A stretch of 64,000 nt of DNA, taken from the sequence record PQ227241.1; one strand, written 5' to 3'. Made by a program: the position numbers and the translations under genes. The stretch's first letter is position 1. Every line of letters starts with the position of its first letter. The notes below the pieces were generated by a model. The model made no database searches, was not told where the DNA came from, and saw only the letters and a list, made by a program, of their open reading frames with translations. Shown here one piece after another: positions 32,437 through 52,648 of this stretch.

Positions 32437-32733
32437 TTAATTTACATCTTTCATTACAAAGCAACTACCATCATTAAAGACAATCTTAATTAGATTGTCA
32501 GTTAATGGTCGTTTATATACAACACATTTTACATCGGGGAGTTTAACTACTTCTTTTAAAGCATCTGGCATACCAATTAGATTAATGGTAGCTGCTACTT
32601 TATTTAGTGTGTCAAGATGTGAAATCAGCTCATGTGCTGACTTAACCAAATCTACCATTGTTTTGTCTTTATCTACCATGCTAGTTACTCGATTTGATAT
32701 ATGAGGTACATACATCGCCAAAGTCTTCACCAC
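32437..32733 (-). CDS. Hypothetical protein (start uncertain)
   Basis: ORF track. Confidence 0.65.
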   Translation of the reverse strand: MVKTLAMYVPHISNRVTSMVDKDKTMVDLVKSAHELISHLDTLNKVAATINLIGMPDALKEVVKLPDVKCVVYKRPLTDNLIKIVFNDGSCFVMKDVN

Positions 32734-33175
32734 TAGTATCAGCTACAATTGCAACTGGCGACCATCGAGCGGCAACAGCCTCACATACACCGATCGAATT
32801 CACTCGACGAATCGCATGAGCACCAGTATCAATTACACTGAAACTGAGTTCACTAATGATTTCCACTCCTTTTAGTTCAGCGCTACTATCAATAACCTGG
32901 GTACTAATTAGATAGTTAGCTGTATCATTATTATACGCAAGTACTAGTCTAAAAACCATGAGGGAGTTATCATTATCGGTGATGCCAGCGACTAGCTCAT
33001 GATTCGAAGTGAGTGTATAGATACAACTACTTTCTTGAGTGGTAATTGGTAATCCTGGTGAAGAACTATATACACTAGGTGCATTAGCTGTATGTAGTTC
33101 AAACTTATTTACAGCGGAGTTAGGACCAGGAACTTTATAACCAATAGGTCGGGCAGTGAAGATTACAACGTTCAT
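32681..33175 (-). CDS. Hypothetical early protein
   Basis: GAGG RBS; follows a TATATTAC promoter. Confidence 0.75.
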   Translation of the reverse strand: MNVVIFTARPIGYKVPGPNSAVNKFELHTANAPSVYSSSPGLPITTQESSCIYTLTSNHELVAGITDNDNSLMVFRLVLAYNNDTANYLISTQVIDSSAELKGVEIISELSFSVIDTGAHAIRRVNSIGVCEAVAARWSPVAIVADTSGEDFGDVCTSYIKSSN

Positions 33176-33220: not shown

Positions 33221-33244
33221 GTAATATAAATCTCAAATTTTTTT
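33221..33244 (-). promoter_or_regulatory. Early-type promoter (TATATTAC)
   Basis: aaaaaatttgagattTATATTAC on the minus strand. Confidence 0.7.
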
Positions 33245-33258
33245 CATTACGATATAAA

Positions 33259-33276
33259 GCCTCCCCGAAGGGAGGC
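33259..33276 (-). terminator. UUCG-loop terminator ending the structural operon
   Basis: gcctccc-cgaa-gggaggc, 7 nt after the 33283 stop. Confidence 0.75.
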
Positions 33277-33282
33277 AATATG

Positions 33283-33975
33283 TTAATTACCACTATAAGT
33301 ACCTTCAGTACCCTGTTCTTTACGTCGTACGAAGCGTTGATGAATTGCACTAAGAGCACGGTCCATTGAATTAATCACTACCTGATTCTCTTCACATGCA
33401 AATGGGCCTGCTTGGTAACCTTCAAATAAATCTTTAACGATTTTAATTAGACAGTCAGCAGTTAGGCCATTTACACCAACTTCTGGAACAAGTCCATTCT
33501 GCATTAGGATAACGCATTCAGTCAGGTTATCACCAGGCATAGCAGCTGGGTTAGTCTGAGCATTATAACCAGTTACCACATAACGTTTAGTTGCACCTGA
33601 TTTCTGGTCAATGCCACTTGCTTCAATATTTAGACCATTTTCATCAAAATGTTCATGGCCATAAATACCTTGCATAGTTACCCATCCACCATCTTCTTGA
33701 TAAATCCAATCTACCCCATTTACATGATAAGTATCGCCTGGTTCAGGGTCAGCTGGAAGATCTTTAGTAGTGGTTAATGCACGGATACGCGCATATTCTT
33801 CAATTGCAATTTGTATATCAGTTGCAGTTATATTCTTCTCAGTTTCAGAAGCTTCGTCATGTTGTGATTTATCACTACCTTCCTTTTGGTCATTATCCAT
33901 ATCAGAAGCATCTACTGTACTTTTAGCTTCTTTACTTTCTAAGGAAGCTAACCACTCAAGATTAGGTTTAGACAT
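33283..33975 (-). CDS. Tad1-like anti-Thoeris/CBASS signal sponge fused to an acidic leader and small beta domain
   Basis: C-terminal GATKRYVV...ILMQNG...GVNGLTADCLIKIVKDLFEGYQAGPFACEEN...HQRFVRRKEQGTEGT follows the Tad1 pattern; start moved to MSKPN (GAGG RBS). Confidence 0.78.
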   Translation of the reverse strand: MSKPNLEWLASLESKEAKSTVDASDMDNDQKEGSDKSQHDEASETEKNITATDIQIAIEEYARIRALTTTKDLPADPEPGDTYHVNGVDWIYQEDGGWVTMQGIYGHEHFDENGLNIEASGIDQKSGATKRYVVTGYNAQTNPAAMPGDNLTECVILMQNGLVPEVGVNGLTADCLIKIVKDLFEGYQAGPFACEENQVVINSMDRALSAIHQRFVRRKEQGTEGTYSGN

Positions 33976-33982
33976 ACTTACC

Positions 33983-34288
33983 TCAATAAATGAAACCACC
34001 AATGTAAAGTGACACTACAACATCGGCAACCCGAGGGTCTTGTGAATATTTAGATTTGACTAGTTTAATAAGTTCGGCTCGATTTTTAATGAAGCCTAGT
34101 TTCTTATTATCAATTTCTTCAGCTTCAATTAGGAAGTCATTTAACTTCTTCTTACTACCCAGTACATTAATCACCATTTGATCAATAACTGCATTAGTAT
34201 TTGATAGTTTAGTTAACTCTTGTTCAAAAACTTCCTTACGTCCTTCTGATCCAATTAGAGCTAGACCGATCTTTTTAAGTAGAGACAT
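33983..34288 (-). CDS. Hypothetical protein in the structural operon
   Basis: ORF track; its stop overlaps the RBS of the Tad1-fusion gene. Confidence 0.75.
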   Translation of the reverse strand: MSLLKKIGLALIGSEGRKEVFEQELTKLSNTNAVIDQMVINVLGSKKKLNDFLIEAEEIDNKKLGFIKNRAELIKLVKSKYSQDPRVADVVVSLYIGGFIY

Positions 34289-34346: not shown

Positions 34347-43122
<8,776 letters not shown>

Positions 43123-51835: not shown

Positions 51836-52648
51836 ATGCAACCATATTCTAATTTTTCTGGTTTGCAACAGCGTACTAATAACCAAGTAGTTATCGGCAG
51901 TGATATGTTAGCCGGTACTAATAAAAAAGGTGTATTAGTACCTGATGCGGATGGTTACTATCTAACTCCACTAGGAGCTTATGGTACCCGAAATTCAGCT
52001 GGTATGTTCTATGAAATGGCATCCGGCGTATCTATGTTTAATCCAGACTCACCTTTAATGCGCCGTGTTAAAAAGGGTGTTCTATTCATGGAATACAAAC
52101 ACCCTGAACCCTATCGTAAAGATGGCACACGGATGAATGAACATGAGTACCTAATGCGAATTCGTCAAATCGATGATGATCGTGTGTGTGCGCATATTAA
52201 GGAACTTATTCTGGTTGATTCTACAGATGAGAAAGGTCTTCCTATTAAACTAGTACTTGGCAAATGCAAACCATACGGTCCTTTTGGTAAGTACTTCGAA
52301 GCATCTATTACCAATCCTTCTCAGAATACTTATTGCTCGGTAAGGTCAATAACTCAAGATGATCCTATGCGCGGTATCAAATATACCCGTGAGATTTCAA
52401 CTTGGGATATGGTTGGGGAAGGTGGTATTTACGGTGCTAATAAATGGAATTCCCCTGCATTAGAGAACTATGAAGATCAATTAATGGTTATCACGCCTGA
52501 TACTCTATATCAGGTACAGCGTGAACGTGAACGTCAAATTAACATGGGTTTTGAATGTTCTGATATCACCAATGTGACAGATCTAGCGAAAAGTCTTGGC
52601 TGGGATATTTCACCAGTTAAACATAGGCGCCCTGGCTTCATGCGTTAA
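51836..52648 (+). CDS. Prohead (head maturation) serine protease (phiKZ gp175-like)
   Basis: EYKHP His motif; CSVRSIT catalytic-Ser motif; TWDMV; C-terminal SPALE autocleavage-like site. Confidence 0.85.
   Translation: MQPYSNFSGLQQRTNNQVVIGSDMLAGTNKKGVLVPDADGYYLTPLGAYGTRNSAGMFYEMASGVSMFNPDSPLMRRVKKGVLFMEYKHPEPYRKDGTRMNEHEYLMRIRQIDDDRVCAHIKELILVDSTDEKGLPIKLVLGKCKPYGPFGKYFEASITNPSQNTYCSVRSITQDDPMRGIKYTREISTWDMVGEGGIYGANKWNSPALENYEDQLMVITPDTLYQVQRERERQINMGFECSDITNVTDLAKSLGWDISPVKHRRPGFMR

Follow-up and report, generated by a model that had tools for sequence, protein, structure and literature searches.

A phiKZ-type gp184 gene combines a leader, a putative capsid anchor and a Tad1 domain, and very probably supplies an ejected sponge of immune signals

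The window analyzed here, a stretch of 64,000 nucleotides from sequence record PQ227241.1, comes from a phiKZ-like Pseudomonas phage. It carries on its minus strand a three-gene operon that ends with a gp184-type gene. The operon and the elements around it are, in the direction of transcription:

36362..36389 (-), terminator-like hairpin (12-bp stem, 7 GC pairs) that separates the operon from a 2241-aa lytic transglycosylase gene
34347..36341 (-), gp182-like 664-aa gene, first of the operon, matching phrog_3181 (E 4e-259)
33983..34288 (-), gp183-like 101-aa gene, middle of the operon, matching phrog_27341 (E 5e-65), function unknown
33283..33975 (-), gp184-type gene (leader, putative capsid anchor and Tad1 domain), 230 aa plus stop
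33259..33276 (-), intrinsic-terminator-like UUCG hairpin closing the operon (7-bp stem, 6 GC pairs)
33221..33228 (-), exact match to the TATATTAC motif, between the UUCG terminator and the next gene
32681..33175, next gene after TATATTAC, 164 aa

The gp184-type gene starts at an ATG (position 33975) located 7 nt beyond the stop of the 101-aa gene, with a GAGG ribosome-binding site 8 nt 5' of it, and ends with a stop codon at 33285..33283, as given by the list of open reading frames and the translation. The mechanical call of open reading frames takes the frame back to a TTG at 34002, giving 239 aa and an overlap with the end of the 101-aa gene (33976..34002, minus strand). We rejected this longer form and prefer the 230-aa form because the latter is supported both by the ATG with its GAGG site and by the deposited gp184 sequence, 8y6v_I, which begins MSKPNLEW. 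The protein strings quoted in the initial annotation of this DNA recur unchanged in the translation of 33283..33975. At the nucleotide level, the gene is 100% identical to those of Pseudomonas phages PA02, kmuB, and HUST_1; about 30 further phiKZ-like genomes match it at 95-99% identity. Its product shares 96.1% amino acid identity with PHIKZ184 (AF399011.1) and matches PDB entry 8Y6V chain I, named 'gp184', with an E-value of 1.4e-150 (phmmer, PDB); judged by sequence comparison, it is the phiKZ-type gp184/Tad1 protein.

The gene order described in the initial annotation (664 aa, 101 aa, 230 aa) is found in the window, with the hairpin at 36389..36362 lying upstream. The 664-aa gene also matches phrog_20401, 'virion structural protein' (E 3e-20), and the annotations of its counterparts in 201phi2-1 and phiPA3 point to similarity with phiKZ gp182. 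On the 3' side of the gp184-type stop, the expected UUCG hairpin (GCCTCCC-TTCG-GGGAGGC, followed by the tail TTTATATCGT) closes the operon at 33276..33259. Past this terminator, at 33228..33221 and thus downstream of the gene as had been noted, lies TATATTAC, which we read as a candidate phiKZ early promoter. With 9 occurrences in the window against 7.6 expected, the 8-mer shows no enrichment; because it is at chance frequency, the match was rejected as evidence for such a promoter in its own right, and only its intergenic position counts. phiKZ early promoters are described as having an 'AT-rich early consensus'.

The 230-aa protein is composed of three unequal parts:

33799..33975 (-), residues 1-59, acidic leader, a candidate propeptide and capsid-targeting part
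33652..33798 (-), residues 60-108, putative capsid anchor, a small β-strand module (DLPADPEPGDTYHVNGVDWIYQEDGGWVTMQGIYG) that ends with G-H-E108
33286..33651 (-), residues 109-230, Tad1 domain, a β-sheet plus two long helices

Residues 109-230 form a genuine Tad1 domain, as phmmer, the profile search, the AF2/Foldseek fold, and the pocket residues all agree, and the initial reading of the C-terminal ~120 aa as Tad1-like is thereby upheld. A single-sequence phmmer search of all PDB chains matches residues 117-226 to Tad1, with six sequences scoring between E 1.5e-6 and E 1.3e-5; apart from these and the gp184 chain 8y6v_I, nothing in the PDB chains scores below E 1. When searched exhaustively with phmmer at E<=1e-3, residues 111-230 retrieve 2040 cluster representatives. 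The best of these, 19 other homologues, and residues 109-230 were combined into a 150-sequence profile, which matches the Tad1 chains with E-values from 5.4e-31 to 4.2e-28 and spans residues 8-124 of the 125-aa chains. In addition, phrog_2428 matches the gp184-type protein with an E-value of 3.7e-18. The AF2 model of residues 109-230, computed as a monomer from the 150-sequence alignment, has a pLDDT of 94.5 and consists of a β-sheet (strands at model residues 2-4, 7-14, 21-27, and 45-50) followed by two long helices (65-81 and 87-112). The Tad1 fold is described as an N-terminal antiparallel β-sheet followed by two long C-terminal helices (PMC10680739). Superimposition of the model onto PDB structures with Foldseek, a check that the initial annotation had proposed, returns Tad1 chains as all of the top 20 matches (E 9e-8 to 4e-6, prob 1.00, TM 0.60-0.77), the first match after them having an E-value of 0.087.

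Neither the whole protein nor either of its halves gave a relevant Pfam-A match with hmmscan, PF24729 being absent even at E<=10, and NCBIfam gave no match for the gp184-type protein. PF24729, which we take to be the Acb2/Tad1 hairpin domain, is nevertheless the precomputed Pfam label on most of the homologues in the protein database, and the name Acb2/Tad1 hairpin domain appears in BFVD descriptions. The discrepancy is between libraries and not in the sequence: either the Pfam-A copy is without this model or the match was missed. AntiDefenseFinder reports Tad1 in phiKZ (PMC11724313).

The pocket of CbTad1 that accommodates gcADPR and cyclic dinucleotides is formed by F82, N92, R109, and R113 (PMC10680739). 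In the phmmer alignment, with which the Tad1 pattern given in the initial annotation is in keeping for CbTad1, these residues correspond to Y187, N197, R214, and R218 of the window protein, and the four columns are conserved in 147/150, 150/150, 150/150, and 146/150 relatives, respectively. From these residues, the conserved pocket is predicted to bind the gcADPR of Thoeris and the cyclic dinucleotides of CBASS. Two other CbTad1 residues, R90 and T97, belong to the cyclic-trinucleotide site and to the hexamer contacts (PMC10680739). They are replaced by E195 and N202 in the window protein, and the trinucleotide site is therefore predicted to be absent. The R90 column holds E or D in 19 of the 20 leader-bearing homologues and R in only 16 of the 150 relatives; because this column varies family-wide, the loss of the site would characterize a subtype rather than define the family. 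We predict, then, a leader-bearing Tad1 subtype without the CbTad1-type trinucleotide site.

The altered residues E195 and N202 could also be taken to mean that the likeness to Tad1 is limited to the fold and that the ligand is something other than immune nucleotides. With four out of four gcADPR/dinucleotide pocket residues kept, a profile match (E 5e-31) that spans the whole Tad1 chain, and three papers that name the protein Tad1 (PMC12676376, PMC13282480, PMC11724313), we regard this as improbable in the extreme. Two papers that refer to Li 2024 (PMC12676376, PMC13282480) report that phiKZ Tad1 blocks CBASS and Thoeris; phiKZ is absent from the 2023 preprint by Li et al.

The N-terminal part of the protein has the acidic leader that had been described ahead of the Tad1 part: D and E make up 23% of residues 1-120, residues 1-59 are predicted to be mostly disordered (AF2 pLDDT 31-37), and a W-x-x-S/G-L-E motif is located close to the N-terminus. 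Between leader and Tad1 domain, full-length AF2 predicts strands at residues 64-67, 82-85, 88-92, 98-100, and 105-111, the last of which continues into the Tad1 part. This full-length model (20 sequences) is poor, with a pLDDT of 57.6, and served only to place the 34-residue fragment seen in the capsid. Indeed, phiKZ gp184 is a minor capsid protein of the inner capsid surface, where it belongs to the vertex-binding complex (PDB 8Y6V chain I), and it is described as mainly β-strands in the capsid, with large parts unresolved (PMC11297242). The 8y6v_I chain comprises only 34 modeled residues, which share 97% identity with the window protein and superimpose onto the full-length model with an rmsd of 1.6 Å (Foldseek); the chain is not among the Foldseek PDB matches of the Tad1-domain model. 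Given the single substitution allowed and the mainly β-strand description, we place the fragment, with the help of the model, within residues 55-108 and not in Tad1. A placement at residues 1-38, which also implies one substitution, was rejected in view of the disorder of this segment (pLDDT ~31-35), the β-strand description, and the 1.6 Å superposition. With the fragment mapped to residues 55-108, it would therefore be the small module that docks on the capsid. The initial annotation had rightly recognized a small module at this place; judging by the 8y6v_I fragment, the module is a capsid-bound piece and not a spacer. Its proposal that the protein is loaded into the capsid is matched by the presence of the 96%-identical phiKZ gp184 in 8Y6V chain I.

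Five S/A/G-x-E sites are found in the N-terminal part of the protein: S-L-E13/S, S-K-E16/A, A-S-E44/T, A-I-E59/E, and G-H-E108/H109. The number of such motifs in the first 110 residues (5 vs a mean of 2.6 in shuffled sequences, P=0.08) is not above chance, so the evidence lies in their positional conservation and not in their presence. The E13 site has an S/A/G-x-E at the same alignment column in 18/20 homologues, the E59 site is aligned with one in 5/5 long-type homologues, and the E108 column carries one in 20/20. Moreover, all 26 of the 26 leader-bearing homologues examined have an S/A/G-x-E that precedes the KRxV core of Tad1 by 8-40 residues, a retention that is supportive rather than a probability since the sequences are related. 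The A-S-L-E13/S and A-I-E59/E sites had been listed in the initial annotation and both occur in the leader. G-H-E108/H109, absent from that list, sits at the junction of anchor and Tad1 and is, on its sequence and position, most likely the site that frees Tad1. The gp175-like protease gene said to lie in the window is also present:

51836..52648 (+), head maturation protease, gp175-like, matching phrog_3014 (E 3e-90)

For phiKZ, gp184 is reported to be cut by gp175, with 'previously verified cleavage sites' (PMC11297242, citing Thomas 2012), in line with the trimming postulated for the window protein, 96% identical to it.

Comparison of the locus that follows the gp181-like transglycosylase, gp182-like, and gp183-like genes reveals three modular states. 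The phiKZ-type phages have leader, anchor, and Tad1, all three; the other two states are found in the following proteins:

L002:2857-3132, Psa21 gp249, leader and anchor only
L004:3357-3635, RVTF4 XDJ14874, leader and anchor only
L003:3773-4342, phiPA3 gp217, leader and Tad1, without anchor
L005:3264-3863, 201phi2-1 gp280, leader and Tad1, without anchor

Psa21 gp249 and RVTF4 XDJ14874 (91-92 aa) stop right after GLYGH(V), which is aligned to GIYGHE108 of the window protein. Without recourse to the protease motif, the three states therefore put the domain boundary at residue ~108; they also suggest that a gene was fused or split at a protease site. According to its annotation, 201phi2-1 gp280 has been detected by mass spectrometry.

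The persistence of the anchor alone at this locus in Psa21 and RVTF4, together with the gap-filling position of gp184 between gp86 and a capsomer subunit in the vertex-binding complex (PMC11297242), would also be expected of a protein that acts mainly as capsid cement, with Tad1 tethered in the head and no role in the next host. Such a role is, however, very unlikely to be the main one. The tad1/gp184 gene is non-essential, being dispensable at 37 C in TnSeq and competition assays (PMC12676376), and gp184 bearing a C-terminal 3xFLAG tag is injected into cells blocked in translation by gentamicin and recovered from them, as seen by western blot (PMC10449902). Furthermore, the residues of the ligand pocket are strictly conserved among the 150 relatives, and the phiPA3- and 201phi2-1-type proteins keep leader and Tad1 without the anchor.

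Extensions are also seen elsewhere among Tad1-domain proteins. Among the 167 that were collected (P0021-P0167 included), more than 50 residues precede the domain in 66 proteins, and more than 30 follow the matched stretch in 23; these extensions are of several unrelated kinds, and some may be miscalled start codons. An N-terminal domain 'LPRYRSHKVV...' recurs in P0038, P0046, P0057, and P0068, with a similar one in P0072. Some members reach 440-484 aa, and P0055 has two matched stretches, its N-terminal part also resembling the Tad1 core. P0022 (300 aa) carries a W-A-K-G-I-E leader as in the phiPA3/201phi2-1 type, some 100 extra residues between leader and Tad1, and an S-V-E-D motif immediately ahead of the Tad1 domain; its extra domain may represent a second cargo loaded by means of this leader. 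Stand-alone Tad1 matches occur in the Bacillus phages Bc431v3 (orf166), Bcp1, JBP901, BCP8-2, Z3, QCM8, and Emiliahah, several of them annotated as '(putative) structural protein', and Tad1 may perhaps be present in the virion proteomes of these phages too.

The explanation that we consider highly probable is that the window encodes a three-part gp184/Tad1 which is loaded into the capsid, cut by the head protease, and ejected as a sponge of immune signals. gp184/Tad1 would be produced along with the other virion proteins and incorporated into the prohead, where the small β module (residues ~60-108) would dock on the inner capsid surface close to each vertex. The gp175-like protease would then cut at S/A/G-x-E sites and leave the anchor on the shell, while the Tad1 part would be freed inside the head and ejected into the next host, there to sequester Thoeris/CBASS immune signals. 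The published model for phiKZ, in which 'N-termini wedged into the capsid and C-termini liberated by a head protease are injected' (PMC12676376), has the same outline, and the ejection with the genome that the initial annotation had put forward is in accord with the delivery of gp184-3xFLAG into translation-blocked cells. Protection would depend, we infer, on the ejected dose rather than on new synthesis.

The dose itself has a bearing on this last point. With five vertex-binding complexes per vertex (PMC11297242) and our own vertex count, the resolved capsid sites amount to only ~55-60 gp184 copies per virion, and roughly 60 ligand sites would make a small buffer unless further copies sit unresolved in the head. 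In addition, ejected proteins may enter the early-infection vesicle and not the cytoplasm (PMC13282480), and none of the papers cited here by PMC number was found to tell the contribution of ejected Tad1 apart from that of newly made Tad1. All this would suit a situation where packaging is real and protection nonetheless comes mainly from Tad1 made during infection, which we hold to be unlikely, though less so than a cement role. Phages of the phiKZ, phiPA3, and 201phi2-1 types have all kept a leader-Tad1 fusion together with the protease motif before the domain, which argues that loading is selected; the western blot documents injection of gp184 under conditions of blocked translation (PMC10449902); and the gene is within an operon of virion genes, not behind the early-type motif.

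A wider reading, which we offer as possible and give somewhat less than even chances, is that phiKZ-type heads are loaded with cargo in a modular manner. The leader (W-x-x-S/G-L-E), alone or with the 45-residue β anchor, would bring a passenger into the head, and a protease site at the junction would free it. On this reading, phiKZ gp184 would be a fusion of a minor capsid protein of the Psa21/RVTF4 type with a leader-Tad1 cargo of the phiPA3/201phi2-1 type, and leader or anchor may carry other, so far unrecognized ejected anti-defence passengers, for example in P0022. No statement of modular loading was found in the cited literature on phiKZ gp184.

If the preferred explanation of an ejected sponge holds, the phage pre-loads its counter-defence in the head, so that it is present before any phage gene is expressed. 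The shell of a nucleus-forming phage would be useless against diffusible signals, and the packaged sponge would be its answer to Thoeris and CBASS. A virion-packaged, trimmed, and injected Tad1 has already been published for phiKZ and is not new; because of this, the value of the present work lies in the confirmation that an earlier sequence-only reading was sound and in a sharper domain map. The additions are small: the distinction of anchor and cargo, the E108 junction site, and a pocket that is conserved without the trinucleotide-site residues.

The closest known system is gp184 of phiKZ, the same gene in a close relative, of equal length and with a shared position in the operon, for which reason the published findings on it should apply here. 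Nine substitutions, at positions 23, 39, 43, 45, 48, 54, 75, 176, and 215, distinguish the two proteins and spare both the pocket residues and the E13, E59, and E108 motifs. The stand-alone CbTad1 and CmTad1 (Clostridium prophage; 7UAV, 7UAW, 8SMD, 8KBB-8KBH) have the fold, the gcADPR/dinucleotide pocket residues, and probably the sponge mechanism in common with the window protein, but they are ~125-135 aa long and without a leader, whereas the window protein has 108 extra N-terminal residues that would serve its loading into the capsid. phiPA3 gp217 and 201phi2-1 gp280 are syntenic and have the acidic leader with W-x-x-S/G-L-E followed by Tad1, but are devoid of the β anchor module and measure about 190-200 aa. 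Conversely, Psa21 gp249 and RVTF4 XDJ14874, also syntenic, share leader and β anchor and do not possess a Tad1 domain. A similar route is taken by phiKZ gp93 and further gp175 substrates of the inner body or head: their N-terminal piece remains in the capsid lattice, and the head protease releases the C-terminal piece, which is injected (PMC12676376, PMC11297242). The C-terminal parts of gp93-type proteins differ in being helical inner-body domains and not a known anti-defence fold. Further afield, T4 IPI* and P1 DarA/DarB are anti-defence proteins that are packaged in the head and leave it along with the DNA on ejection, and IPI* likewise carries a short capsid-targeting leader that is removed by the prohead protease. 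These proteins have unrelated folds and counter restriction-type nucleases by binding or protecting, without sponging of a small-molecule signal.
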